Assembly: GCA_965637545.1 (NCBI GenBank)
Contig: OZ281496.1
Coordinates: 14,384,001 to 14,448,000 of the forward strand
Reading direction: 5' to 3'
Origin: Phallusia mammillata
Lineage: Eukaryota
Length of the DNA: 64,000 nt
The first letter of the stretch is position 1. Every line of letters begins with the position of its first letter. The position numbers were made by a program, and so were the translations under genes. Of the stretch, positions 469 through 50,860 are shown one piece after another. Below the pieces are notes generated by a model. The model was not told the DNA's origin, did not search any database, and worked only from the letters and a program-made list of their open reading frames with translations.

Positions 469-799
469 GAAACTGTGCAACTGACGAATTTGAATGCGCA
501 TCTGGAGCTTGTATTTCCACAATTTTGAGTATGGGATTGTGTGAATGGAGATGATGAGACTGGTTGTCTTCCACATGATTATGTCCAAGGCAAGTTTCAG
601 CCAACAAAGTCCAAAAATCTCACATGTACATTGGTGCTTGCAAATCCATCCATGTACATCAGAGACAACCGCTCTAATATGTAAAGTTGTGCACGTAACC
701 ATAGCAACTTTGTAATTTTATTTTGCAGATATTGATAACTGCACTGCACATCAATTCGTTTGCGCCAGTGTCACGTCGATTTTGCCGGCGACTGTTTCG
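469..799 (+). pseudogene. LDL-receptor class A repeat exons, frameshifted
   Basis: Exon 469-589 reads NCATDEFECASGACISTIL, then after a frameshift WDCVNGDDETGC. Exon 729-799 reads DNCTAHQFVCAS, then after a frameshift CHVDFAGDCF. Both have AG acceptors, and both have small deletions in the middle of the LDLa module. Confidence 0.65.
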
Positions 800-1791
800 G
801 TAATAAACATTAAATAATATGGACTTGACTAATTCGGTAACGAAACTTAAAAAAACGAAAAAGACACAAATTTTTTTTCTGAATTTTTTTTGTTCAATAT
901 TTGAGAATTGACAGACAATAGACAATATATGTGAGAATAACTCATGGGTTCAAGGCTAAAAAATCAAATAACAAATGTTGGGTACCCATGTGTTTCTGTC
1001 TAAACCAAGAAACGACAAAACATTACGACAATTGTGACCACTGTGTAACGTAACATGGCAAATGACATATACAAACGTGTTATTTTCCAAATGTTAGAAA
1101 AACAATACGTTTATCAATGAAATTGATTTGAAGGCTCTCGTATGTAATTGGCCTCTGCGTTTTAATTAATCTTCTGTTAATTTCTGTTGCCATTTATTGT
1201 AAAGGTTTTGTGGTCACTTTGATCTGACTAGGAAAAGTATTTCCACTACCCGCTGAGTCATCTAGAGAAGCTGTATGGCATTAAAAACAGTCAATCTTTG
1301 ATTTAAAAAAAACAACAATTTGTTTGGTCTTTTAATGATCACAACCAACTGCACAACATCCGGAGTTTCGGCCAGGTATGTTCTAAACTAAAAAATATAT
1401 ATTTTTGTCCTGAAAGTGCCACTAATATTTATAGCAAGTGTAAATGGAATTTTTGGGGATTCCAATTTCTATTATACTTTCGTTTGTTTTCGCAGCCTGT
1501 CAGGAGGTTATGTACGATGTTTCCTCCACGGCAATCAAAGGGATTTATTACAAAACAATGTTACATGTTTTCAAGCGAGACCAGGTAGTATAGGCACAAT
1601 TGACAAAAACTACACACAGAACAGGACCAAAAACTTTTTTGTAGGTATTTTCTCAGTTTCCACCAGTATGTAGGTTGAAGCAAAATGAAAAAAAAAACGT
1701 TTGACAATTAGGGTTACTAAAATACCAAATTCTGTACACAAACACACACATTACGTAACCAAATCACCTGTTAAAGACAATCCGGACTACA

Positions 1792-3030
1792 TTACGTTGC
1801 AACAATTTCAATGCCTTTGCAGTTGTGTGTATTGAGGCAAGACGCTGAAATGAAGTTCTTTGTACATTTAGGGCAATGAAGTTTTTTTAGCTTTGTTTTT
1901 CCATGTTCTGTCTTCATGTGTTCTTGAAACTGTTCTATTCTTGGAAAGCTAAGAGGACATTCGGTGCACTGATGACGTTGCGCTGTTGTGTGAATTTTCA
2001 TGTGACGCAACATGTTTCCGCGCTGACAAATTTTCTTCTCGCAATACTTACAAGCGAATGGCAACTCGCCGGTATGGAGCAGCATATGGTTGTGCAAAGT
2101 TTGACTATATCCGAAACTCTCTTTACAAACTTTGCATTGGTAAGGTTTTTTCTTACAATGAACTTTTTCCTCGTGGGTCGTCGCTTGTGATTTTGTAGCA
2201 AAAGTCTTTGTGCAGACGCCGCAATTGAACTGTTTATTTCTAGTATGCATCACCATGTGACTTTGAAGATGATGCTCTCTGCGGAAATTTTTTTCACAAA
2301 CGTCACATCGGAAAGGTTTTTCGTCATTGTGGACTCTCATATGGGCGATCAAATTGTGTTTGAGGTCCGAAGAGAAAGTGCATTCTGAGCACTGGTGGCG
2401 CTGTTGCATGGAGAGCCCGGGATGTTGTGACTTAAAATGCCAAACTGCTCTTCGCACTCGATGCACTTGTGAAGCGTATCTGTGAAAATGTCGTCGTTGT
2501 ATCGTGGTTTAGAGCAGAAGCAATGTTACCATATTGATAGTATTATTTCTGTAGTAAATAAGGGTAATTTTGTTAATAACATAAAAAGAAGTTTATGCAG
2601 TCCGATTCAAAAGATATTTTACTCTACCCATAAAAATATAAATTTGTAATCCAAAAAGCATTTAAAACAAACCTTCGTGATTTTTTTCGTGAAGTCTACA
2701 AGTTCCTGCTCGTGCAAATTGCTTGTCACAAAACTTGCATCTGTACGGTTTTTCTCCTGTGTGGCCATTTAAATGCTGTTCGTAACTGAATTTCCATTTA
2801 AAAACCTTTTGACAGAAACTACAGACAAACCCCTGTCCTTGATTATGCATAGATCGCTTGTGACTTTTCATGGCACTTGACTGGCTAAACTTTTTCCCAC
2901 ATAAGTCACATTTGTACGGTTGTTCAAAAGTATGCGTGCGAATGTGAAGTTTTAGATGTTCCTTTCGCTTGAATCGTTTCTCACAAATTTCACACGAAAA
3001 CGGGCGTTCCAGATTTTCCTGAAGTGACAT
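1792..3030 (-). pseudogene. Multi-C2H2 zinc-finger gene (~12 fingers), two exons, frame-disrupted
   Basis: ORFs 2662-3030 (4 fingers) and 1792-2466 (7 fingers) have HTGEKP-type linkers. A phase-1 intron at 2480-2672 gives HE-D-TLHKCIECEEQF, but that finger changes frame near 2410-2450. Confidence 0.75.
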
Positions 3031-5008
3031 TTTCCAGCAGTGATCGACTTTATACCCACAAATTTCTTAAAGAAGCTGAAACTGTAGACTTCTGCACAAA
3101 ATGAAATACTTAGCTATTTGGTATGCGTTTTTGTTCAAGCAATGACTAATTTGACCAAAAGAGCGCTTTAAGCACACTAGTTATCAACATTGCACCTATT
3201 TTTTTCTCTTGCAAACTAACCTCCTAAACAGTAGTTCGAGAAAACCGATAAGACATCGCACTTTGTCGCAAAAGAACACGCAAGCTAGATAATGACTGGC
3301 AATTAACACCTTCTCCATTGTTATTTTCAGGCCATACACAAAAGAAGGCAGTTGGAAACAAGCAGCTGCGTAAATGGCCAACAAGACAATTGTTACCACA
3401 ACTTTATTTAGAATTTAATGCGGCTTATTACATTATTACCGCTGTAAAAAGCCATTTTTCACATTACACTTTATTTGCTAAAAAGCTTACAAATATTTTT
3501 AAATATGGTGTGAAAGATGTCGGTAATTTTGGTAACAATTGAATAAATAAAATGAGGCCCTTGTCTTAGTCATTAAGCCATGAAATATTCAGTAGTAGGT
3601 GCATGCTTTATTACAAGAATTTTGCGACAGGCTAGTTAATCTCTCAAGACACACCGGTTAAAAAACACGCCAAGCTACGTTGCATTGAAAATAGAAAGTG
3701 TGTATTGGCGTCCCAATTCTTTCGTTTAAATGTGAAAAAATCATTCTGCACTACGGCAGGGACTAACTTTTTTTGTAAAATTACCACAAGATCTCTAGTG
3801 AAATACATTTATAGGTTTGAAGAATTCGGGCCAAATGTTCATAGTTTGCAGATAAGAAAAAATTTTTTTTTCAGCGATGTTAAACAAAGAAAACCGTAAT
3901 GTGCGCCGCAACTTAAGTATGCCACAAGCTGACAGGGTACAAACTTGACACCACTACGTACAACTTTTAAAACTGGAAGTTCTTTATATGTTTCCTAATC
4001 TTTATAACATAGATGGCGAAATAAAACCAACACCAATCTTCAAGTAAAACCATATCTGTTTCACATACTTTTCACACTGCCTACCACATTGAGCGACACT
4101 GACGAAATTTAAAATTAATTCTTGTCGTAGACCAACTAAGTCACTTCCAAAATAACTGCTCCATCGGGTATTCAAGTGGTACTTCGCATATCGTTGCGTA
4201 CGCATTTGCAAAGTCATATCGTAAGTCTAAGTTTCATGCAACTTACATCCAACCCGGTTTTCTATGTAGTAAAGTTTTCCAAAACCTTTCCTTGCCTTTC
4301 CACACAGAACAAGTCTATCGTGTGCGGCGAACGCAGGCGTTCTTGTCAAACAGGAAGCAATTCAATTCACGTGGGGAACCAGAGCACGTAATGTGGGGCG
4401 GATTAAAGCAGCGGCCGTCAAATGAATCGGGGTATCTTTAGTGTGTTTCCATGGCACGTCTATAGTGGTTAACTGGTCTGTTTTTCGACGCAGGTTATAC
4501 TTTTAACTACAAGTTATCCGATAAAGTTGTTTCGTACACTCCTTATACTGTATGTTCTTTGGAATAAAACTGTGGTTTTAATGTAAAAGTGGCAACAGGC
4601 TTTGTGGTCATTTTTTGCCAAAACATTATTTTAACTTCAACAAACTTTAACGTGAAATTCGAAACTCCTACAGTTATTCTTAATATGGTTTAAAATACCA
4701 ATACGACAGCGATGTAGAACCTTACGCTTTAATATAGCAGTAAGTATGAAAAGCATCAATATTTTAAACCATGTTATGAATAACATACGGATTTCCTGAA
4801 CTCGGTCTTTATCAACTGCTCTACAAAAATAATGAATGTGGTATACACTTTCTTTTCCTAGTCGTACCTTTCCATAGTTCGCGCCACGCAATATAAGGCG
4901 TTTGTGCAGCTACTGCTAATATACAATCGGAAGCAATTTAGTTGCCCGTTTCTGACCACACTTAGTGTCGAAAGCATATGAAGAAATACATTTTAAACTC
5001 TGTGAGAC

Positions 5009-20280: not shown

Positions 20281-21892
20281 AAGTCAATTCTTTTTAGTCA
20301 AAATAAGTTATAAAATTTGCGTCTACATGAATATAGTGCTTAAAAAGCAGGTAACATTTTGACAGAAGAAGTTGCGACTGTTGTGCACTCACCCGTAACT
20401 AACAGAAAAACAGATGCACAGTCCACAAGATTGCAAGTACGAGTGCTGGACACCCATCTCATTCGTGTGGGCAACAGTGTAGTAATGCACATAGTCATTT
20501 GATTGTCAGCCATGCAAGCAGAAAACATATTTCATGACACAGAGGTTTGTCTTTGCTTCAGAGCGGGGTAGTAATAATTCATTGAAGAATTCAGGGTGTT
20601 ATATACATTTTTTAGGTTTATATCAAGACAATAATGCCGCGGTGTATGTAAATTTGGTACTTCACGTTAAACTCAGTGAATTTGTGTAACATATGAGCCG
20701 TGTGTTAGTTTACAATTACTTTATGGTAACGCGACAAAAAAAAAACAATGGGACGATTGCTGCAGGTCCCATTTATTGTTCGTCTTTTTCTATTAAATGC
20801 AGTCTTAAATTTTTTTACGAGCAAAAAAATATGATTAAATAAAAACTACTCTTTGTATATGTTAAGAAGAGGTGATATTGCTTCGGCTTGTTGTTTGTTT
20901 GTTTGAAACAACAATTTTAGTGAAAACATAATTTTAGTAATAATTGATATTTCGTAATTCCTGTTCAGCAATTCAACAAAGACGTCAGTGATCATGTGAT
21001 TTTAATTTTAGGCGAGAAGTGTTTAATGCATAAGTTTTGAAAGTACAAGTTTCATGAACGCACAAGTTTTAAAACCTGTGATGGCTCTTTGCGTTTTTTT
21101 TTTTTTTTTTTTTGAAGCGCTGACCACAGAAAAGTATTGGGAGTTTGTAAAACCACTCTTCGCATTATGTTTTTTGCTTTCAAAAGTGATTACATGTTTA
21201 AGAAAAATATTGTTACGTATTGCATTGAACTTTTTATTTTCCTTCAAAAATATTTTGCTAAGTCACGTGCCATACAGGCCGAATGTCAAAATCCCGACAG
21301 ACAAAAATTAAAATAACGATAGGTAAATATTAAATTCCGATAATCACTGGAATCTAATCGACGATGATTGATATTCCTATATTAGCGAGTTAAACACCAC
21401 CCACCAACGAATGGGTTAGTTTACTAGCTAATGAATTTTGTCAGTTCCCAATCTTTTAAAATCACACTGGTTTTATAGACTTTTTTTGTACATCCGGCAA
21501 ATTTGTGCAAGTCATCTCGCTACAATCGAGACAGGGCCTCAGAGTATGTATCGTCGGAGAGACGGGCAGGTTTCACTACGCGCCTGAAGGAACAGCAAAG
21601 ATACGTAACAAAGGGATGTCAGGAAATCGGCCATGTTGCTGTAATTGCCAAGAGACAGGGTACAGAAAATGCTGGTTTTTAGAATCTGAAACTCACGCGC
21701 CAAACGATAAACATAAAAACAAATGTTCTAATGCCGATAAGCTATCTTTTACACCCCATAAACACGGAATTTATCTACGTGATCGCCGTTTTTTTCCCTT
21801 TTTTTCACCCTCTTGGTGTTATAACAACGAATGTGTTGGGTAGCTGACATTAACCTCTTGTAGGACGTCAACACGTCTGATAACTTGTACTT

Positions 21893-21908
21893 ATTCTATT
21901 TTAAAAAG
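21893..21908 (+). other. Genomic relic of the ascidian spliced leader at the retrocopy 5' end
   Basis: ATTCTATTTTAAAAAG matches the Ciona SL ATTCTATTTGAATAAG at 14 of 16 positions. It lies at the 5' TSD junction, 33 nt before the ATG. Confidence 0.8.
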
Positions 21909-24900
21909 GTGACATAACTAAGTAAGGTAATTTGATTGAAAATGAATATGAGTAAGATTTTGTTACCTGGAAGTACTGAGAGTTTACAAACTTCCTCACA
22001 TCAGATGTTTTCTACCACACAAAAGTCTGAAGAAAGTATTCACAGTGGGGTTGAAAACAGTCATCTACCTATTCAAATTCCCAAAGAAGAAACAAAATTA
22101 AATAAAGTGAAGAAATTTGGGTCAAACGTCAGCTTGGGAAGAAACAAGGTGGAACCTTTGTTTGATGAAAATCGGCCAACATCAGCATCAGTTGGTGGAT
22201 TTACTCTGCAAAATAGGCCGAAAACGGCTATAGATGAACTTCGTCATCAGCAATTCTATCACAAACTAAAAAAAACCTCCCCTGTTCAATCCACCAACAA
22301 GCCTAAGGAGCAATCAGCACTGATTAAAGAAAAAGAGCCTGACTTGACACAAACTGATGTGTTTCATGAAACAGCATATATTCCATATGAGTATGCTCAT
22401 GCCATGATTAGTAGAATTGTTGATGATATGAAAAGTATGAAACTGAATCATCTCTCAATTGTTGCTAAAATTGAAAATCAGTACCAATCGATTGAAAATG
22501 AAACTCAGACCCAGTTTGAGACATTTCTTCATGCATTACAAGCCAAGCATCAGTCAAAAATTGATTCTTTTCACCATGTGATTAGTATTTTAAAGTCACG
22601 ATTAGCTTCCTCAAGTCAAAGTTTGGACACCATTGACAGCCTGAAGTTGGAAAATAAACAGTTATTACAAGAAAAAACATCATCTTTGAAAGCTAAAAAA
22701 GAAGCAGCCCAAGAAATTTTTTTCATGCCACTTGTAAATGATAAAAAAGAGGTACCTGGGGTTGTGGAAGAAACTGATGAACAAGGGGAAAAGATTGCTG
22801 ATGACTTACAACAAACAGAAAAGTTATTACAACCAATCGCAGAGCAAAATGATGAAGCTGATGCAATTGTCAAACCTTTGAAAACAAATGCATCTGGAAA
22901 AATATTACCAGGTGACTTCACTGCACACCAAAAGGACCAGTCAGGTTTAGATGAGCAATTTGAAGCTCTGAAACCCATGGACGAAGTTAACAGACAAGTG
23001 GATATTGTTGAGGACACAATAGATGTTGATTCTATACTTAAATCTGATGATGTAACACAGTTTCTAGATGAAACAGAAGATGACATCATGAAACCTATTT
23101 AGAAGATTCAAATTATGATCCAGAGAAAACTTCAGAAGGTTTTATATCTATGAAAACAACGGTTGCTGCTGTTGCAATAATGATTGGAGACGGAGATTAC
23201 GAATCTGCACCAGCGGCTAACTTATCAGAAAAAGATGTCTCGAATGTTAAAATGAAAAGACCCAAAACAGCAGAAAAACGTGGGGTAGACCAGCAACTGC
23301 AAAAAAGTCGCAAAATGCTGGTCGAGTTAAAGAAACAGAACGATGCATATTCCAAACAAATACAGTCTCTCGAACGGCAAATTAACTCTGTTGGTCCAAC
23401 AACAGGAAGTTCGGCTGGTGGTGTTGACAAAGACAAAAAGAATGGAAAAGCAAGTTAAGGATTTGGAAAAAAAGCTTGAGTTCGAAAGCAAAAAGCTGGA
23501 AAAAATGAAAATGTCCAACACTGATTTACAAGGCAACTTACAAGCATCCTCTAAGGAATTGGCTGACCTGAAAAAAAGACTTACAGCCCGAGAGCAGGAA
23601 TGTGCACATCTTCGCGAATCTGCTGGTGCTGGAGTGGTGGCGCTACAGCAGGTGCCCGTATTACAAAGCCAAGTCAAAGATTTGACAAATATGAACAAAA
23701 TCCTGACAGAAAACTATAATTCCGAAAGAATCTTAAGAAAAAAGTACTACAACATGGTTGAAGACATGAAAGGAAAAATTCGCGTGTATTGCCGTGTACG
23801 TCCGTTGAGTTCCACTGAAAAGCAAAACAAAAACAAGAGCGCTGTGTTTTCCCCCGATGATTACACGGTAAAAGTCGAGCAAGCCCGGGGAGACCTGAAA
23901 GAGTTTCAATTTGATCAAATATTTACAGAGTCGAATAGTCAAGAAGACATTTTCGAGGATACAAACAGTCTGGTCCAGTCAGCGGTCGACGGATACAACG
24001 TGTGTGTATTTGCAAACGGGCTCTGGAAAAACGTACACCATGCTTGGCGACAAGGAACAAAAAAATCCTGGTATTGCTCCTCGAGCATTCAGAAGAATTT
24101 TTGATCTGATAAAAGCGAACCAACAGAAGTTTAATTTTCGGATTTCCTGCTACATGCTTGAATTGTACAACGAAAAACTGATAGATCTCTTGGGTAAAAG
24201 TCAAAAGTCCGACGTACGACTGGACATAAAAAAGACAACAAGGGGATGGTATTTGTCCAAGGATGCACAGTTGAAACAGCTGAATCTGCCGATGGTTTAT
24301 ACGAAATTTTTTCGAAAGGATCTGAAAGTCGTCATATTGCTTCGACAAACATGAACAGTGCAAGCTCTAGATCCCATCTTGTCATCGGAGTTGTAATCGA
24401 AAGTACAAACTTGGCAACTGGAGCTGTAACACGTGGAAAGTTGAGCTTGGTTGATTTGGCCGGGAGCGAACGTGTAGGCAAAACCGGAGCCACTGCCACT
24501 CAGCTTAAAGAAGCAAATTCTATCAACAAATCTCTCTCAGCTTTGGGAGACGTGATTTCTGCCTTGTCGAGTGAACAAGGGTTTATTCCCTACAGAAACA
24601 ACAAACTTACCATGCTGATGCAGGATTCCCTCGGTGGAAACGCAAAGACACTTATGTTTGTGAACGTTTCACCTGCTGACTACAATTGTGCGGAGAGCAC
24701 AATTTCCCTGACTTACGCATCGCGAGTAAAATTAATTACCAATGACGCCAGCAAAAATGCCGAAATGCGTGAGGTTGTCAGACTGAAACAAATTATTGCC
24801 AAACTGAAAGCTGGAGAGTCGGTTAATGATGTCGACAGTTAAATCTGTGCCAATGCATCATTTTCAAAGTTTTTATCTGTGTACAGCCATATATAACACT

Positions 24901-24981
24901 GCAGTTGTTTTTTTAGTTTTTTTGCTCTCTCACTTGCAGTCACACCGCGTAGTTATTACTGTGCTTATGTACGATTTAGAC

Positions 24982-25503
24982 CGTTGGTTCTTAACCGGTG
25001 GGAAATTTGTTGCATTCAGAGGGAAATTTTGTAAGACGGGAGTAACCACACTCCAGCCCTCCGTCGAATCCGGCCTTAAATTAACTGTTAAAGTTAATTT
25101 ACTACATTTTTTGCAACATCATGTAAGATTAATTTCACCTAATGTTAGAAGGTCATTTGTAACATCACAGACATGTCTAAAATGTCAATGCTTTTGTTAT
25201 TGTGCGCGAATAAATGCCTTTTCTTTGTTGATTTTGATCAAAAAATGAGTAATGCAACAGAAAGGACATTTCAATATCCCACACACTTTTGCTTTCTCAC
25301 GGTAGCACTATTCAAACTAAATAACATTGTAGTAAGCCTATATGGTCCCAACCAAATTGCTTCACAAAAGTATTTCAATCAAATCATTTTTTTGTTTACG
25401 TCGACCACAAAACATCTTTATGAAAAAAAAAAACAGAGGGGGAAATTCGAACTTGGTGATCGGCTTTAGTGGGAAACTATCCCAAAAAGGTTAAGAACCA
25501 CTG
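24982..25503. mobile_element. hAT MITE in the 3' UTR of the retrocopy
   Basis: Termini cgttggttcttaacc / ggttaagaaccactg. Perfect TSD atttagac (24974-24981, 25504-25511). Confidence 0.88.
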
Positions 25504-25826
25504 ATTTAGACCATTCTAAAGCTAGACTCAAGGAAGATTTCTACGCTGTTATATTTGTCAACGCACAAACGTGTCATTCATTTCATTCTTCAACAAAATG
25601 TGTTTAACTTTTTGAAAACAATATACTTGAAAAGAGGTTACACCATATCACTGAATTACTCAATTTTTCAAAAGGTTGTTGTATTTAATAATTGAGTTGT
25701 TTTACAAATCTCCTATTCCTTGCAAGGTCTGGCCCATGTCTTCACAAATTGTTTTGATCTTGCACTTTTCCGAATAAAGACAATCTGCGATTTTAGACAA
25801 AAAAAAAACTTGTACTTATTTGCCGG

Positions 25827-25967
25827 ATTCTATTTTAATAAGAAAATATGTATTTTTTCTTAATAACAGTTATGCTTTGTGGCATCAAGGTTATGTGAAC
25901 TGATTGTTACCTAAAAGAAAATATGATGGAAAAGTACGAAAAAGTGAAGGTTGTTTGGAAAGGGAGC
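25827..25967 (+). pseudogene. Second SL-headed mRNA fragment: 5' UTR plus NEK8-like kinase start
   Basis: ATTCTATTTTAATAAG at 25827-25842 (15 of 16 to the Ciona SL), an 80-nt UTR, then MMEKYEKVKVV(+1 nt)GKGA, similar to NEK8 MEKYERIRVVGRGA. Cut off by a hAT end. Confidence 0.6.
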
Positions 25968-26021
25968 AAAATATCTATGGGGTGCTGCAACTCCGCAGCC
26001 TACTTGCACGAGCCGCCCCTG
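25968..26021. mobile_element. Terminal fragment of the ZMYM1-like hAT family
   Basis: aaaatatct..ggggtgctgca..gcacgagccgcccctg matches the termini at 46288-46339 and 62580-62630. Confidence 0.75.
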
Positions 26022-26032
26022 GTAGAGCTACT

Positions 26033-26137: not shown

Positions 26138-26591
26138 AGAGCTACTTACACCATAACTCACTTTCACTGTTAGCAAAATTGGGTAACTAACACCCAAAAT
26201 CATTGGGTACTTCTATGCCAAACAGGGTACATTCGTGGGGACACCCAATATATTTTTTTGGGTGATTGATACCCAAACCAACTTGGGTATCATACTTACT
26301 TACCCAATTTTCGTTTTTGGGTATGATGATTTTCCACCCAAACGCTATATTGGGTAGCTGTGGTTTGTACCTTATTTAATGTTCTGGGTACATTCGTGGG
26401 GACACCCAACTTTGTTGGGTAAAGATTACCCAAATAAAATTCTATCCAGCTTTCACCACACAAATATAGAAAAATGTGTATTTAAAAGAACAGTGCTGGA
26501 AAAAAAAGTGTATTTAAAAGAACAGTGCTGGAAGAAAAACAAACAAACAAACAAACAAACAAGGAATTGTTAAAGAAATCACTGCAAAGCA

Positions 26592-28709
26592 TTAAACAGT
26601 TAGGCCTATTTTCATTGCCAATTCTTTGACAGAATCATTAACACCTGCTGTCTGGATACCTAACCAATAGGTTTGAAGAAACTGAAGTGCCAAATGAACA
26701 TGAGGACAATATTCATAGTTAAACACGTAGTAGTATGCAAACAAAGCAATATATGCCTGTGTTAGGCTTTTCACTTCTATCAGTGGTTGTTTTTCACAAA
26801 AAGGCGGATTTTCTTGACTTCTTCTACACTGCCAAATACTGCAATGAATGGCTGGTGGCGATCCGGAACAGCTTTAATGATGTCATCTATAGTTGTGTTT
26901 TCCTACAAAAGTAAAATATGTCGTAAGACTGAATTCAAAGAAGACCTATTCAATGTCTCAACAACAATTTATTGCCACCACAACTTACCGGGTACAGATC
27001 AAGCAGATACCTCTCAGTGCAGTATTCCTTTTTGGTGTTTGACCGAATAATATTGCACAAAAGCCAAGATCCAAAAATGATCTGTTGATCTATAAAAATA
27101 AATTGTCGAGTGAATACCGTTGTTGGTAATATGATGTCAAACGAAAATGAGCATGTAATTTTGACATTTTTTTTAAAAGTTTTTTTTAATAAAACCAAAT
27201 ATCTTACCAACTGGGAATTGCTCTTCATTGTTTAATGGGATCTTTTGCAAAATTCGTTTGACCTGCACAGATGTGGTCTTTTGTTTGGCATAGTTGACAA
27301 TGCTCATGAAAATGTTGGACTGCAGATAACTCTCTTTGTCGAAGCGCTGTATCTTTTTAAATTCTCTAACCAACTGGAAAACAAAAAACAACAAATCAAT
27401 TATAGTGCTGCAGCCGTAGAAAAGAATGTATTTTTTACCATTTAAAACACACATATAAACACATACAAACAACACAATGCCGAAATAGTCATTGTTACAC
27501 TAAGAGTATGACAGAATAGATATGATGGAGAGTTATTTACCTCATTATACCCCGACAAAGCTGGCCATTCTTGACATGCAATTTTTGGGCTAGGATTAGA
27601 AGAAAAATAACTCCTTCTCATAGAAAACGTTTGATCCATCATATCAGAAATTTTGCGCTGATTTCTCATGCCAGCTTGCTTTTTGAACTCTTCTTGCAAC
27701 ATCTGGAATAAAATCAGTTTTTGCTCAAAAAATATTCATGGTAGCGGTTTAAAAACTGCTTTAAGGAATGAGCTATGCTTGGTCACACAACACGGAATAT
27801 TCAAATGTTGCAATTCAAAACAACGCAAACTTACTTTTTTTTTTTCCGCAACCAAAATTTCTAAAGCAAAAGAAATATACATTAAATAAATATACACACA
27901 AGGTATATACAATGTCAAATTCTACCTTGGCATCTTCTTCATTAAGGCCCAAAGTTGCCTTTCCAAGTTTTATAAATGAGGTTAACGCTGATTTTTTTGT
28001 TGATCTGGTAGGGAAGCTATAAACAAAACATCAATTACAACAGATTATAAACTATATTGCAACTTAAATTCTTGTACCTTTCATACTTTTTCATAACACG
28101 TATTATCTCGGTGGTGACTTCCCGCTTGCCCTTTTCTGTAAGTGTACCAGTCCGTATAAGCTCTTTTGCATGAAATCCGAAATCACACATTTCTATAGGA
28201 AACACTTTGGGGACAGTCTTTGTTAGATTTGGACGATCTTCCAAATCATGGTTTGAGGTTGAACTTTCTGCACTGGTGGATATTTCACTTGAGTCGTCCA
28301 AGCTAGTGCTTGAACTTGACAATGACATGTTGCCAAGATCAGACTTCTCAGAATTTGTAAGTTCCTGATAAACTTTCAGCAAACTTCCTTTTGGCAAATT
28401 CGGAAATATTTTAAACAATATGTCAAGCTGACTGACAGCTCCAAGCGCCTTCCCATCAATTTTGTTGTCTAAAAATTGCAGTAGCCTATATTAGCAGGAC
28501 ATACATATTTTTTATTCTTCTCCAAAATTTAGCAGCAGAAGTAAAAACACTATATTTGTGACTGACTGATTTGGATTATGACACATTGGCTTACCATAAA
28601 AGGCTTTGCAAACATTTTCCCGTTCGCTTTCATCTTCGTCTTTCAACGCCAAGGACACTATGTCTACAACGTCTTTAACACTGAGGTTCATAATTTCACT
28701 AATATTCAA
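26592..28709 (-). CDS. CACTA accessory gene: SAM-domain (SAMD3-like) protein, multi-exon, possibly disrupted
   Basis: SAM-like ENKIDGKAL..L..IFP, TFSMRR..WPAL and C-terminal LFAYYYVFNYEY..LQFLQ..LGI. A poly-A run near 27835-27845 may break the frame. Confidence 0.7.
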
Positions 28710-28848
28710 GGTTCAGATGTTTAAAAAGGTTAATTTCCTGTGCAAACAAACAGAAAATATCAATAAAGTTTAAAACCACGCGGCACAGTCAGAAATTCGC
28801 AAAGGAATGAACTTCCTGGGCAAGATTTTTGCCGCGCAAATCTGGGTG

Positions 28849-28911
28849 TGACGTAACTTTTCGCGCCGAGTTTCCGATTTGATTTTATACTCCTAAACTT
28901 TTCGCGCCAAT
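28849..28911. promoter_or_regulatory. Candidate E2F/CRE/CCAAT motifs in the CACTA bidirectional promoter
   Basis: aacttttcgcgcc occurs twice, with TTTTCGCGCC at 28858-28867 and 28899-28908. TGACGTAA at 28849 and CCAAT at 28907, all between the two divergent genes. Confidence 0.45.
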
Positions 28912-29129
28912 CGATTCTTTTTAATTTGTGAAATTAAAAAGTTACAAAAGATGAAAAAAATAAACGTTTTGAAGATAAACTAATGAAGTTGAAAATCTTT
29001 TTAAGTGAAGATCAGAAAGTAGCGAAACGTAAGGACGTTACGCTCATCCGAATTTAACTAAACAGGTTTATTTTGGCTGAAACTGGTTCACTTCATATGG
29101 TTCATAGTCATAAATCATGATCAGTTGAC

Positions 29130-32100
29130 ATGTGTAGTACTAGTGTGGAAAGAATTTTGTTCAAGTGCACATTTTGTGCTAACTGTTTTAAAAGTAGAAT
29201 GGCTTTAAAAAGGCATGTGTTTTCTTCCCATTGCTATGACAATACTTTCAAGCTAATTTGCAACATAGATGGTTGCTCGATGCAGCTAAATGACAAAGTT
29301 TCATTGCGACAACACATTAGAAGATGGCACTGCGGGAAGTCCTGGCATATGCCGACTTGTTGGTACAGATACTCGTCCAGCAACACTGCCTCCAACATAG
29401 AAGAAATTACCGTTCCAAATGACACACCAATGGAAGAAGAAACTGGTTCATGTGGTAGTGATTGTGACACTACTACTTGCAGTGATGCAGCTTGTGAAGA
29501 TTCTTGTATTGATCAGGACATTATTACTTACAGAAACACAATAAAAAACTTGCACAAAAGAAAGCAGTTAATGGCTCTTTCACTAACCAAATTAAAGGTT
29601 GATTGTAATTTGACTGAGTCGGCTTTACATTTAGTAGAAACGTGGGCAGAAGGCCTACTAGAAGAGAGTATTCGAACTATAATAGGAGGAATTAAGGCAA
29701 CGCCACCATTGTCTTCAAGCCATAAGGAGTTATTTCAACTCGCAATGGGATTAGCCAACCCCTTTCATGATATTGTGACTGAATATCAAAGAAAAAAACT
29801 TCTTCCAACATAGGTGGTGTACTGACCCAGTGGGTAGACAATTAAACACTCCGTGTATCTGACTCTAATAATTAAACTATCGCTGCCTAAACAAACCTAA
29901 CAAGACGCAAAGCTAAATTAACGTTCCCACATTATATTTCAATAAAGCATGCCACGAAAATGCCTCTTACGGCTAAACACGCAACACAAAAGTCACGACG
30001 CCAACGCGTGAGCTACACCCAAGCAAGCTACTGTAACTAATAAACTTGGTAACTTATGTACTGAAGTTAAATCTAAATTGACGCGGTTTATATAGCGACC
30101 AGGTCAAATGTTGTTATGTAAGCGCAGTCGTAAAAACGTACGCCCGAGAAGATGAACTAAGTTCTAAACCGCAATTATTCTTTAAATTGCTTTACAGAAG
30201 TGTCACATATAACATGGCTGGAGGTTAATTTAGACGTGGTTCTTGTTAACACGTTAAAAGCGATACAACAATAGCCTTAAGCCAGTATATGACCAGCGTG
30301 GTGATTAGAAAACAGGTTTAAAAGCCGGTCAAGCTTTTGTGTAGAAAAAAGGTGAGGTTTGACCGAGTTTGACCGGGACAATATGACACGACAATTATAC
30401 GAATTAAAATGTTTTGAATTAAAAAGTCCAAAGTCCGATACAGTGGTAAGTGTGATTTGCCATGGTTGCCAATATTGTATTTTTTAACTGAAGTATACTT
30501 AAACAGACTCCTATACGACATATATTATTTGAATGTCCGAAAGATGGTTCGAAAGAAGGCGTGGAGTACCATTCACTTGAGTATATTTCACTTATTGCAC
30601 TTTTAAAAACATTGCTGGAAAATTCCAGTCTCTATGACTGGGTAAGTATATTTGCAGCATTAGATTATACAAAGTGTGCTTCGTGGAAAATATTCATCTC
30701 TAAATTTAACTAAGATCATCGAATCAGAAGAGGATTTGGATGATGTGGATGCATATCAAAGTTTTTCACATGGAGAGTATGCAAATATGCATCCTCTTTT
30801 TTCTGAAGCAAGACCAAACTTACAACTTTTATTTTACTATGATGGATTTGAGGTTGTTAACCCGCTTGGATCCAAAACAGGCACACACAATATGGGTACA
30901 ATAAGCAGTTTTGTTTGTTGTATTTCGCATTCAAGTCTTTTTTGTTTCTCTTTCAAGGTGCAATATATTTTTTGATACTCAACACTCACCCCAAACTTAC
31001 ATCAGCTGTAACTAGAATTTTTCTCAGTACCCTATTTTATACTAAAGATTTAAAACACCCTCAGATTGGTTGGGAAAAAATTTTGCAGCCACTTAATCAG
31101 GACATAAAGCAACTTGAAACAGTAAGTAAAATGTAGTGACAACTGTAACTTAATGTATATATATTTCTGTGTGTGTGTTTTGCAGATGGGTGTTCAGTTC
31201 AATTATAAGGGTTCAGAAGTGACTGTTCGAGGGACAGTTGCACAAATATCATTGGATAATTTAGCTGCACACTCCTTTCTAGGCTTTACCGAGCGATTTT
31301 CAGGGTTAAATACATTCGTATCAAGATACTGTACGTGCACTGGAAATGACATTCAGACAAAGGTAAAAGGCTTTTTATGTGTTGCTTATTAAGTAAACTA
31401 TTATAAAAACTTTTCGTTTGCAAAGTGTTTAAATTTGTTAGCATAAAGTGTTCTCCAAATGTTTTAAACAGAATTCCTACAAACAATGTCAACTACGAAC
31501 CCCAGAAATGTACAACGAGTCAGTAGTAGTAGCACAGGCAACAGGGAAACCTCATCACGGTATAAAATTTCGATGTCCATTGTTATCTCAGTATTTTCAC
31601 CCAGCAGAAAATTATGCTGCTGATGTCCATCATGATTTATTTGAGGGTGCAATTCCATACATTCTTAAACTAACTTTACAGGTAGTTCGATTGTTAGCAT
31701 ATAATCATGAGTACATCTTGCCCTAAACTTTTTTTTCTTTTAAACAGAATCTGGTAATTAAAAAAAGACTGTTAAGTCTTGATTGTCTGAATAACAAAAT
31801 TGATTGCTTCAAGTATGGTATTGACCTAAAAAACAAACCATCTCATATTTCTTATGGCAAGTTGATTGATGATTCAAACAAAAATTTGCGCCAAATCGGT
31901 ATGACATGTGTGTATGTTTGTTCAACCTAGTTTATTTTTGCTGTATTTGTTGTTTTGTCAGCATCACAATATTGGTGTCTATTCCGATGTTTGCCAATGT
32001 TGATTGGAAGCTACATTCCTGATGAAGATGAAGTTTGGGAGTTATATACAATGTTTTGTGGAATTGTTGACATATGTTGCGCACCATTTGTTTCTGGGAC

Positions 32101-32830
32101 CACAGTAACTGAACTGGAGTTAGAATTGCAAAGTTTTTTTAAAATGTTTCATGCCAGGTATCCTGATGCAACAATTACGCCAAAATTGCATTTTTTACTA
32201 CACTATCCAAGATTAATTAAAAAAATTGGTCCTCTAATACATTTTTCATGCATGAGATTTGAGGCCAAGCATAAAAGTTTAAAGCAAATTGTCACCAGGA
32301 GTAACAATTACATTAATGTTCCACACACCATTGCTGTCCAGCATCAAGTGAAATTAGCATCAAATATTATTGAAACTGACATATTTTCATGCTCTTTCGA
32401 AATTAAAAAGTTTACAACTGTAAATTCACGTGATGTGTTTGGATCAAGTAGTAGCCCCACTGATGAAACTTATGTTAAAAAAACTGACAACCTCGTATTT
32501 GAAGGGATAACATACTCTGTACCTTGTGTTGTATGTGTACATGTTTGTTCTGATGGGGTGACAGATTTCCTGTCAGTAGATGCTGTTTATTTGAGTTCAT
32601 CATGTGGTCCAATACTTGTAGGGCAGTTGCTTTGTGTTAATTATTACAATGAACATTATCATGCATGGTCCGTAGAACCCACATCAGTGAAAGCGTATGT
32701 TCTTCAAAAAAAATTATTTTATCCTCACCCTTTGTGCATAGTTTCCCCATTCGGTGTATTTGAGAAATTTGTGTGTCCAAAATTTAGATTAGAGCCATTG
32801 AAATGTTCTGCCTGTATGTATTTGAGTTAA
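29130..32830 (+). CDS. CACTA/EnSpm transposase with N-terminal C2H2 fingers, multi-exon
   Basis: YYDGFEVVNPLG, DNLAAHSFLGFTERF, DVHHDLFEG, ITPKLHFLLHYP, SCMRFEAKH. Most introns join in phase. An in-frame TAG at 29811-29813 precedes an unexplained ~690-bp interval. Confidence 0.85.
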
Positions 32831-33261
32831 CTGAATTGTGTGGAAATAAAAAAAATATTTTAGGATCATGGTTGCCATGTGGGAGAAACAATGGTTGTGA
32901 TTTTGCATTAGTTTGCTGCAGCTGCAATAACAGACATTTTTTGGTTAGCAATACCCAAGTGTCTGAAAATACTAACGATTTTTTTTGGGGTACCTGTTGA
33001 CCATACCCAAACTATTTTTTGGGGTACAAAACCTGAGCTGAATATTTGGGTAAAAAAGCCGACTACCCAAAAAAAACTTCTCACACAATTGGGTGGTACA
33101 ATTTTCTACCCAATGTTTAATTGAAGTTATTTTGGGTAATCATACTACCCAACTATACTTGGGTGAATTTTAACGATACCCAAAATATTTCCGCACTTTT
33201 TTGGGTAAACAAACACACTACCCAAAACTTTAAAATTTTGTACCCAACATTTTTGACAGTG

Positions 33262-33480
33262 TTCGATAGGTGACGCAGGAGCTGAATTATTTATTTAGCG
33301 GCTGAATGGGGGTAAGGTGGGGAAGTAAGGTTTTAAAATTTTACATTAATAAGTAAATGTTTGGGTTATTTTCATTGAATTTTTGATCATAATACCTAAC
33401 CCCAACAGCCCTAACCGTAGGCATGGTTTGAGATATACCGTTTTCAATCGGATATGTGCTCTTTGCGCCACCTATCGAAA
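33262..33480. mobile_element. MITE with TIR ttcgataggtg(a/g)cgca
   Basis: TIRs at 33262-33277 and 33464-33479, internal cctaacc motifs. The CACTA element sits at the tip of its left TIR. Confidence 0.75.
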
Positions 33481-48552: not shown

Positions 48553-50860
48553 GTGATGTCACGGCAAAAATTATTTACTGCTGATGAAGCTTTAGATAAA
48601 TTGTTTGCACTAACAGAAAATTGTAGTGATTCTGAAGCAGAGGGTGATCTAGTAGAGGAGGAAGAAGAAGTTTTAGCTGAGTCAATGTTCTGTGCCACAC
48701 CAGACAAACAGGAGGAGGTCACCGTTGAAGTGATATGCCCCAGTAACAGCATTGAAACAAGACATAGTGCAAACAAAAGTACACTAGTCAAGATAAAAAA
48801 GCGGAAGTTGCTAGCTAGAGTAACAAGAAAAAGGTCACATGATCAAACAGAAAGAACAGATGTTGATCTTAGTTTGTTTAGTTGAGAGGAGGATGGAGAA
48901 AATGTACAAACCTCAGATATAAAAGACAGAAACACTGTTGACGACAATGGTTGGTCTTCAAGACCTTGTTCTTTCTTTGATGAACTCCCAGATTTTGGTT
49001 CTACATCAGTTTCTACTAGTGCCACCCATGACTTTGGGTCTGACACACTTTCAGGACATTTTTTGAGAGATTTTTCAATGATACGCTGTGGAACTTTTTG
49101 ATCAAAGAAACTAACAAATATGCAGTTCAGAAGGGAATTAAATACTGGTCCCCAGTTTCAGTTGATGAGATGAAAGCATTTGTGGGGACATGCATTTTGA
49201 TGGGAATCCACAAATTGCCTTCAGTTGATTGCTTTTGGTCATGAGATCCAATATTACGTGTTGAGTCCATTCACCAAGTAATGACATGTAAACGTTTTAA
49301 AAAAATCACTGAGGCTCTTCACTGCAATGACATTACAACTGCAATCCAGAGAGGAAATTCAGGCTATGATAAACTTCATAAAGTTCGACCACTTATTAAT
49401 CATTTTGATAACGTTGCACAGTTTGAAAATAGGCATTCATCTTTTCAGTCTATTGATGAGTCTATGATTTTGTTCAAGGGGAGAAATGCAATAAAACAGT
49501 ATATGCCACTAAAACCAATAAAGAGAGGATATAAAGCTTGGGTAAGAGCTGACCCATTAACCGGTTATGCATCTCAGTTCGAAATTTATACTGGCAGATC
49601 ATCTGAATCTGGTAAACCAAGTGATTCATTTGGTAGTAAAGTGGTGAAATTACTCAGTAAAACTATATGTACTGAGCAATATGAGAATCATCCAATACTT
49701 CTTGTTTTTGATAATTTTTTCACTTCATTTGAATTGTTAATGTTTTTGCATGAGGCAAATATGTTTTCAGTTGGCACTGTTCGGGCAAACAAAAAAAGCA
49801 ATCTTGTTCGTGGCGAATCAAAGTCTTCAACTATAGAAAATGTTTGTGCAATACAATGGAAAGACAATCGAATAGTAAACCTGCTTACTACTGCAATACA
49901 ATGGAAAGACAAATCGAAGGACACAGAAAGATGGATCAAGAACAAAGTTATCCTGCCCAAAAGCCATTAAAGATTACACAGCATATATGAGAGGAGTTGA
50001 TCGATTTGATCAGCTTAAAGAATATTATTCTGTGTCAAGAAAATCAAAGAAGTACTGGCATAGACTGTTTTACTTTATTTTGGAAGCAAGTTTAGCCAAC
50101 TCTTACATACTCCACCAGGGGTGACACTAAAACGCTGAATGGGCGGGATGGGCGGGACGTCGCGGAAACCGCTCAATATCGGGTAAATTGCTGACGGTTA
50201 GTGCTGTTAGGGTTAGGTTGAGGTTTTATAATAGTATATGAATCAAAAAATGTCCCTGCCTAAAACTTATTCAACTATTTCCTGACATTAGGCAAAAATG
50301 CTATGGCGGGACGTCGCGGGAGATGGCGGGACGTTTCGGGCGCGGAATGTAGTGTTCGGCGGAATTTTTTTTAATGATTTACTATTATAAAACCTTATCC
50401 CAACCTTAATAGCTCCAACCGTCAGCAATTTAACCCGATATTTAGCGGTTTTCACGACGTCCCGCCATCTTCCGCGACGTCCCGCCCTCCATTCCGCCCA
50501 TTCAGCGTTTTAGTGTCACCCTCCACCAGGTTTATTATGATGGGCATAACATTAAGCCAAAATCTTCCCATTTGCAGTTCAATAAACAGGTTGCCCTGTA
50601 TTTGATTGCCAACTTTAGCTCAAGAAAAAGAAAAGTTATTCACCCATGTTATTATCTCCATAAAAAATCTGCTCATGGGAAGAAAATTTGTGTCCCACCT
50701 GAAATTCGATTTCAAAATGTTGGGCAACATCTTCTACAGGCAGTTGAAACTTACGGAAGGTGTAGATTGTGTTCAAGTGTAAAAAAAGACAAAAGAAGCA
50801 AAATTATTTGTCCTACATGTATGGTTCCCTAGTGTATTGCACCTTTTTTTCAAGTTTTGT
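48553..50860 (+). mobile_element. piggyBac (PGBD4-like) transposase pseudogene
   Basis: DKLHKVRPL, SIDESMILFKGR..QYMPLKPIKRGYK, FDNFFTS, YMRGVDRFDQ and C-terminal GRCRLC..CPTC. Stops and frameshifts. Element ends not found. Confidence 0.9.
50119..50521. mobile_element. Foldback MITE with GG termini and 8-bp TSD (Merlin-like)
   Basis: 28-bp perfect TIR gggtgacactaaaacgctgaatgggcgg, extended imperfectly for more than 100 bp. TSD tccaccag (50111-50118, 50522-50529). Inserted in the piggyBac CDS. Confidence 0.85.

Follow-up and report, generated by a model that had tools for sequence, protein, structure and literature searches.

A kinesin-14 pseudogene headed by a spliced-leader copy points to retroposition of a trans-spliced mRNA in an ascidian genome

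How does a short sequence that is joined to messenger RNAs only by trans-splicing come to stand in genomic DNA, at the head of a gene copy without introns? The question is raised by a locus in a 64-kb stretch of the Phallusia mammillata genome (contig OZ281496.1, here C3), in which a kinesin coding region on the plus strand is preceded by a likeness of the 16-nt spliced leader (SL) of Ciona and is bracketed by a direct repeat. The window, C3:14384001-14448000, is the whole stretch of DNA that was analysed, and DNA searches covered the same genome (240 Mb). An earlier reading of the window from its letters, which we call the sequence-only reading, had proposed that a long interspersed nuclear element (LINE) copied a complete, leader-headed mRNA into this site. 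Our analysis supports the core of that proposal: with high probability the locus is a processed pseudogene, and its template in target-primed reverse transcription was a mature kinesin-14 mRNA that had been polyadenylated and trans-spliced to the leader. As the retrocopy begins with a leader that is added only to RNA, its template would have been a finished trans-spliced message.

The intron-containing parent, which the sequence-only reading had suggested looking for, was found by an exon-by-exon search of the genome DNA at a single locus on a different chromosome (C7:14237649-14301883, minus strand). There, 26 exons separated by GT-AG introns join into one uninterrupted 970-codon frame that encodes an intact protein of 970 amino acids. 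The copy on C3 is colinear with all 26 exons, in order, at 93.8-94.1% identity, and contains no intron sequence; it shows the intron absence and the colinearity with a spliced mRNA by which processed pseudogenes are recognized. Its body carries the Pfam Kinesin and Microtub_bd domains, and the closest solved motor structures are those of KCBP-type kinesin-14, followed by KIFC3. The coding sequence (CDS), with its ATG at 21942 and a TAA stop at 24840-24842, had been described as an intronless kinesin of ~2.9 kb, which is accurate as to its introns and domains but leaves out its decay. In the list of open reading frames (ORFs) it is split among five pieces in different frames, and alignment to the parent mRNA reveals four frameshifting deletions (-1 at ~23096, -2 at ~23439, -8 at ~24012 and -1 at ~24228), together with in-frame changes of -12, +3, +6 and +3. 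Because the four frameshifts break the reading frame, the window copy is a pseudogene.

At the 5' end, the parent and the retrocopy part company at a single base. Where its first matching exon starts, the parent has ...ttttgtttcctgcattttAG|ATGATATAAC, with a pyrimidine tract and then an AG acceptor (cattttAG) ahead of the junction, whereas the retrocopy at the same base reads leader|GTGACATAAC. Exon 1 begins with ATGATATAACTAAG in the parent and with GTGACATAACTAAG in the retrocopy, and it is the latter that the 16-mer precedes. The 16-mer replaces the outron exactly at the base marked by the parent's pyrimidine tract and AG, which is the arrangement that characterizes spliced-leader-tagged retrocopies, a leader joined at an acceptor. 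An AG acceptor in place of the leader is what the sequence-only reading had predicted for the parent; the parent DNA, which it had feared might hold the same 16-mer, is free of it, and the 33-nt 5' untranslated region (UTR) that it had delimited corresponds to the start of parent exon 1 (Table 1).

The window leader reads ATTCTATTTTAAAAAG. That a leader heads the copy was a sound observation, although the form seen in the window is two substitutions away from the canonical one (G10T and T13A). A sister copy on C3 at 12.63 Mb (L040) has the canonical leader ATTCTATTTGAATAAG at the same place, identical at 16/16 positions to the published leader of Ciona, ATTCTATTTGAATAAG (PMC7986045, PMC1488885). 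That the 16-mer is the species' own leader is supported indirectly by this identity, by its position at the head of candidate SL RNA genes and by its presence at 4,019 dispersed sites. As had also been noticed, the last three nucleotides of the 5' duplication (ATT) are the first three of the leader, which makes microhomology possible: the cDNA was either complete and joined through the ATT microhomology, or short by three bases, and both fit the junction equally well.

At the 3' end, the match to the parent stops at a run of A's 21 nt past the AATAAA, and the repeat of the 5' flank comes immediately after A10. The retrocopy therefore ends in poly(A) at the parental site, and a target-site duplication brackets the insert exactly. 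The direct repeat, AACTTGTACTTATT, has two exact matches in the window (21882-21895 and 25807-25820), compared with a mean of 0.12 matches in 100 dinucleotide shuffles of the 64-kb window, of which 0/100 contained two. The repeat had been given as 14 bp, which holds for the window today but not for the original event, since the four sister copies that cover the 5' repeat carry G where the window has its first A, and the ancestral duplication was 13 nt. Both A10 and the 3' repeat are conserved in 5/5 copies aligned at this junction. The 3' UTR, AATAAA and A10 are likewise all present as described, with two corrections. First, only 4-6 of the A's are untemplated, because the parent DNA past the cleavage site already reads AAAAcatatg and two others overlap the repeat. 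Second, the 3' UTR is interrupted by an element of ~530 bp, seen as a matching 530-nt gap in the alignment to the parent mRNA. This element has terminal inverted repeats (GGTTCTTAACC / GGTTAAGAACC) and more than 30 further genomic copies at 73-97% identity; present in the window copy only and missing from the parent and the sister copies, it is therefore a later transposon insertion. It is a non-autonomous element.

The retrocopy in the window does not stand alone. Six copies lie on C3, at 11.88, 12.62, 14.40 (the window), 14.92, 15.08 and 16.68 Mb, and share not only the retrocopy but at least 1.4 kb of its upstream flank and 345 bp of its downstream flank. These shared flanks point to one retroposition followed by DNA duplication, and the window copy itself was probably made by such a duplication and not by the original insertion. 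Divergence is 1.1-2.4% among the copies and 4.2-5.1% between them and the parent, and the frameshifts are copy-specific, indicating independent decay. The copy at 15.08 Mb (L034, C3:15084310-15089307) retains, at positions 518-3355, an uninterrupted kinesin frame of 945 codons. It has lost 29 codons in frame, in one deletion, and 22 bp within the leader and 5' UTR, and may on this evidence be considered a candidate live retrogene.

Between the parent and the common ancestor of the copies, synonymous divergence (dS) was 0.128 and nonsynonymous divergence (dN) 0.027, a ratio of 0.21, while after duplication dN/dS was 0.5-0.9. When amino-acid changes were placed using a 74%-identical relative protein as outgroup (the best match in public assemblies, and not the parent itself), 5 were assigned to the stem of the retrocopy and 9 to the lineage of the parent, and 31 were unplaceable. 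These values fit a retrocopy that would have been under constraint for a time and is now decaying. RNA-type data came from Logan contig sets of 4 runs, whose type is uncertain and whose coverage of the kinesin is fragmentary. Two of the runs (X1 and X3) have parent-type bases across 24343-24715, and the two others (X2 and X15) have retrocopy-type bases at 12/13 diagnostic sites; as the RNA nature of these runs is a guess, expression of a member of the kinesin copy family is only suggested. The combination of an intact frame, purifying selection and expression that identifies a functional retrogene was not found in the window copy, and a function seems possible for a sister copy or an ancestor, not for the copy in the window.

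In the same data, contigs with a depth of 350-700 in 4/4 runs match 25532-25784, the equivalent of the parent 3' UTR, at ~94% identity and diverge at 25784, a point at which an AG acceptor would lie on the opposite strand. They probably derive from a convergent, strongly expressed neighbour gene overlapping the parent 3' UTR.

A second leader-headed fragment, comprising the 5' UTR and opening codons of a NEK-like kinase gene, starts 6 bp past the kinesin 3' duplication in the same orientation. The 125 nt after its leader match an exon on C1 (~12541070-12541194, minus strand), which at the same base is preceded by ...ttgcAG|, has a GT donor at its end and encodes MEKYEKVKVVGKG (NEK-like). The fragment is an independent example of the same acceptor-junction logic. 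Its leader, at 25827-25842, has one substitution in the window and is canonical in 4/4 sister copies aligned there. The same G10-to-T change is found in both window leaders (at 21902 and 25836), 3.9 kb apart, where sister copies have the canonical G at both positions; this may have come about by chance or through a short gene conversion involving both leaders. In the window as in the 15.08-Mb copy, a repeat cuts the fragment short. The truncating sequence, at 25968-26024, is a ~57-bp high-copy repeat with dozens of ~90% matches on all large contigs.

Table 1. Coordinates, in window positions, of the kinesin retrocopy, its parts and the adjacent kinase fragment.
Feature	Position	Strand	Remark
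Kinesin retrocopy including repeats	21882-25820	+	Processed copy of the C7 kinesin-14 gene
5' target-site duplication	21882..21895	+	14 nt now, 13 nt ancestrally (21883-21895); exact repeat of 25807-25820
Spliced-leader copy	21893..21908	+	16 nt, G10T and T13A relative to canonical; L040 canonical there
5' UTR, 33 nt	21909..21941	+	Matches start of parent exon 1, C7:14301786-14301883
Disabled intronless kinesin-14 CDS, C-terminal motor	21942..24842	+	26 parent exons, Pfam domains
3' UTR, proximal part	24843..24972	+	Contiguous with distal part in parent and sister copies
Dispersed repeat of ~530 bp, later insertion	24973..25502	.	Terminal inverted repeats; 13-nt flanking direct repeat
3' UTR, distal part	25503..25798	+	93% identical to C7:14237649-14237948; AATAAA at 25773-25778
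A10 poly(A) remnant	25799..25808	+	4 A's possibly parent-templated, 2 overlap the duplication
3' target-site duplication	25807..25820	+	Conserved in sister copies
Second leader-headed fragment, NEK-like kinase 5' UTR and first codons	25827..25967	+	Ended by repeat at 25968

Could the leader have reached the cDNA without ever having been part of the mRNA? LINE reverse transcriptases are known to switch templates, as in the U6-L1 chimeras of mammals, and an enzyme arriving at the 5' end of a kinesin RNA that was unspliced or had a different start might have jumped to a free SL RNA, which is presumably abundant, leaving a chimeric cDNA. In addition, the contigs of the 4 runs stop short of the 5' end of the parent RNA, and none of them shows the leader on it. 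A template switch would, however, be expected to bring along part of the SL RNA intron or to produce a variable junction, rather than a precise 16-nt exon, whereas the junction lies exactly at the parent's AG acceptor behind the pyrimidine tract, and the independent NEK-like fragment shows the same acceptor junction. We consider this the best of the alternatives, and still a slim chance.

The sequence-only reading had itself allowed that the 16-mer and the GT after it might belong to an SL RNA gene, in which case an SL RNA gene or pseudogene would simply abut a 5'-truncated kinesin retrocopy. Yet kinesin exon 1 follows the 16-mer from its very first base, and the G of this GT is an A-to-G change in exon 1 relative to the parent ATGATATAAC. 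No Sm-like motif follows the window leader, whereas the candidate SL RNA genes of this genome continue with GTGCTGATGAAG, and the duplication brackets leader, kinesin and poly(A) as a single unit. The ensemble of leader, GT donor, short intron-like stretch bearing an Sm motif, and repeated unit by which an SL RNA gene is known was not found at the kinesin copy. Against this stand the GT itself, the abundance of SL-related sequences in the genome and, as mentioned in a paper that cites Yeats 2010 for it, the SL RNA pseudogenes rife in Ciona (PMC7986045); even taking these into account, we regard an abutting SL RNA gene as highly improbable.

It is equally hard to credit that the 5' end is the parent outron (...gcattttag), its likeness to a leader being a product of chance and indels. 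The parent's cattttag can be aligned locally with ctattttaaaaag of the window by opening a 4-nt gap, but this explanation is removed by L040, because that copy carries the canonical 16-mer, 16/16, at the same place and has no match to the parent upstream sequence; the window form, moreover, is two point substitutions from the canonical leader. Finally, an assembly artefact (cDNA contamination) or an intron-losing DNA-level duplicate, for which nothing specific speaks, is made extremely unlikely by the six diverged copies with common genomic flanks, by the copy-specific transposon insertion and frameshifts, and by the joint presence of a poly(A) tail, a target-site duplication and the leader.

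Several observations do weigh against retroposition of a trans-spliced mRNA, or against parts of the history that we draw from it. No RNA-type contig in the 4 runs reaches the 5' end of the parent, the nearest (X2) starting at 21920, 12 nt past the junction. The poly(A) remnant is very short, at 4-6 untemplated A's. Searches of the genome with both flanks gave filled paralogous copies only, and no empty site. The insertion is tied to no particular LINE family. The low dN/dS on the stem, lastly, could in part reflect ancient differences between alleles of the parent, considerable in ascidians, instead of selection on the retrocopy.

Taken together, the data suggest the following history for the retroposed kinesin mRNA. 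The C7 parent would have been transcribed, and the 16-nt leader would have replaced the outron at the AG before exon 1; trans-splicing of the parent mRNA at this site we infer from the DNA of the two loci. With 25 introns removed, the RNA would have been cleaved ~21 nt past the AATAAA and polyadenylated. The endonuclease and reverse transcriptase of a LINE, presumably acting in trans, would then have nicked the site on C3 and started synthesis from the poly(A) tail; at least two LINE families of this genome likewise start exactly with the leader. Copying would have proceeded to the 5' end of the RNA, or to within 3 nt of it, leaving the 13-nt target-site duplication and possibly the 3-nt ATT microhomology. 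The earlier proposal that a LINE copied a full SL-headed mRNA is borne out as far as the hallmarks of insertion are concerned, while the enzyme and the presence of the leader on the RNA are deduced, and copying may have ended 3 nt short. Following insertion, the frame of the retrocopy apparently stayed open for a while. Together with its flanks, the locus was later copied as DNA at least six times along C3 (11.9-16.7 Mb), the copies then decayed independently, and the window copy gained its two leader substitutions, four frameshifts and 530-bp transposon.

To see how widely leaders occur in DNA, the whole genome was scanned with the pattern ATTCTATTTNAANAAG and with its reversed control, which gave 4,019 and 14 matches, respectively; about 4/5 of the matches listed are the canonical 16-mer. 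In a sample of 30 leader sites (~21 independent after collapsing local duplicates), the sequences downstream were mostly unrelated to one another, and the leader headed at least two LINE families as well as other gene copies. Two unrelated LINEs, L003 (C1:990145) and L008 (C1:2615372), each have a coiled-coil ORF1 that begins 23 nt and 54 nt, respectively, after a canonical leader, and the APE-like start of ORF2 in both gives a weak match to the endonuclease family Exo_endo_phos, just under the Pfam cut-off. Copies of L003, at 97-99% identity, begin at leader base 1 and have differing upstream flanks. Another site, L021, holds an intronless sequence related to a tandem gene family. The leader thus stands at the head of more than one kind of retroposed unit, and not every one of the 4,019 sites marks a gene retrocopy; that retrocopies of host mRNAs make up the majority was considered and rejected, the sample including LINEs, other repeats, tandem duplicates and gene copies. 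A poly(A) together with a duplication within 1.5 kb of the sampled leaders was seen in one weak candidate. Three leaders on C1 that lie 264-281 bp apart were considered as a tandem gene array and rejected, as their downstream sequences differ. No hammerhead ribozymes were found by Rfam after the leader, in 7 loci at the gathering score and in 5 loci at E<=1, and the pattern leader + N3-9 + GATG covers only ~209 of the sites.

Some leader sites have unusual forms. L004-L006 (C1:1154677, 1550020 and 2181258) represent a dispersed repeat that has 1-2 further, partial leaders behind the leader, e.g. TCTATTTGAATAAG. At C3:746149-746244, four head-to-tail units of 24 bp, each a full leader plus GATTGATG or GAACGATG, make a small leader tandem array. 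At L007 (C1:2319418) an inverted copy of the leader stands directly before the leader and would form a long hairpin; Rfam returned only sub-threshold, plant-microRNA-like matches for this locus, and no hammerhead.

Candidate SL RNA genes were found on C2 between 7.99 and 8.85 Mb, at 7992716, 8523395, 8558719, 8635119, 8815520 and 8831835 (L052-L054), where the leader is followed by GTGCTGATGAAGTTAAACGCGTTTTGG, with GCTTTGG in one copy. They have ttaaggca(gat/act) upstream and a Sm-like GTTTTGG/GCTTTGG motif after the leader and GT; in Ciona, SL RNA genes have taaggc upstream and the Sm motif AGCUUUGG (PMC7986045). The Ciona genes form a short tandem array, whereas the C2 candidates sit in longer repeated units spaced 16-500 kb apart. 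A search of the genome for the leader followed by the Sm-motif pattern RNTTTTGG gave no matches, and a looser TTTGG pattern gave six, four of which are one C2 family. A start of the form leader+GTGCTGATG occurs at two further C2 sites; all of these are candidates only.

Might a leader encoded in DNA be of use to the copy that carries it? The leader ends in a pyrimidine-rich stretch and AG, and might itself serve as a trans-splice acceptor, so that a read-through RNA could be trans-spliced anew and the mature mRNA regenerated without a promoter of its own. We put this forward tentatively and think it rather unlikely. If true, it would account for purifying selection on the retrocopy before duplication and for the leader-carrying LINEs in this genome; the head-to-tail pair of kinesin and NEK-like copies, with 18 nt from poly(A) to the next leader, would be an operon-like unit made by retroposition; and leader tagging would provide ascidians with a built-in route from retrocopy to expressed retrogene.

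Elsewhere in the window, ~7.1 kb at 26165-33262 are missing from the 15.08-Mb copy; at their start stands a repeat of 1.68 kb, also found on C3, C4 and C5. An ORF at 49281-49970 encodes a PiggyBac-type transposase (DDE_Tnp_1_7, E 6e-34), and one at 1792-2466, on the minus strand, a C2H2 zinc-finger protein.

Whatever the fate of individual copies, the leader is a natural 5' tag, which tells that a mature mRNA served as template and that the reverse transcriptase reached the 5' end of the RNA. As the tag is found on copies of host genes and on LINEs, retrocopies should be findable and datable by a simple motif, as in dinoflagellates, and the same motif marks the trans-splice acceptor sites of parents without RNA data. 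For annotation, it follows that dispersed leader 16-mers are not to be called SL RNA genes. The value of the locus lies in this genome-wide tag and in the question that it raises, whether DNA-encoded leaders aid the expression of retrocopies through re-trans-splicing.

Among known systems, the processed pseudogenes of mammals made by LINE-1-type elements share with the kinesin copy the loss of introns, poly(A) at the parental cleavage site, a target-site duplication (13 nt here), a location on a chromosome other than the parent's, 5' microhomology and decay through frameshifts. In mammals, mRNAs lack a spliced leader, and full-length copying cannot be read there from a universal 5' tag, unlike here. 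LINEs found beside spliced-leader sequence are also familiar from SLACS and CZAR of trypanosomes and NeSL-1 of C. elegans, which are specific to spliced-leader genes and insert into SL RNA genes. The leader-headed LINEs described here resemble them in this juxtaposition, but their copies lack common upstream flanks, and at the kinesin locus the leader heads the copy of a host mRNA at a site unrelated to SL RNA genes.

A survey of retrocopies in Ciona intestinalis also catalogues RNA-based duplicates of a tunicate but never mentions trans-splicing or the leader, and leader-tagged copies are not described there (PMC3136929); a survey of Caenorhabditis only speculates on retroposition of trans-spliced transcripts (PMC3532220). 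Our searches for literature on spliced leaders, retrotransposons and tunicates, whose coverage was incomplete, returned leader-tagged retrogenes from dinoflagellates only and no tunicate report, in agreement with the sequence-only reading, which knew of no catalogue of such copies in tunicates. In dinoflagellates, retrogenes tagged with relic leaders (DinoSL) are well documented (PMC5585692, PMC6050394, PMC12014239). There as here, a leader that is added to RNA alone is found in DNA before an intronless copy, which identifies a mature trans-spliced mRNA as the template of reverse transcription and makes the leader usable as a retrocopy tag; the stacked relic leaders of dinoflagellates also resemble the stacked partial leaders of L004-L006. 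The kinesin locus differs in its host, which belongs to the chordate lineage and has a leader of 16 nt, in its visible LINE hallmarks (target-site duplication and poly(A) remnant), in its single leader without the stacked, truncated relics of repeated rounds, and in the window copy being a pseudogene. In light of these comparisons, the finding is a chordate-lineage case of a phenomenon known from dinoflagellates, reached by the ordinary route of processed pseudogenes.

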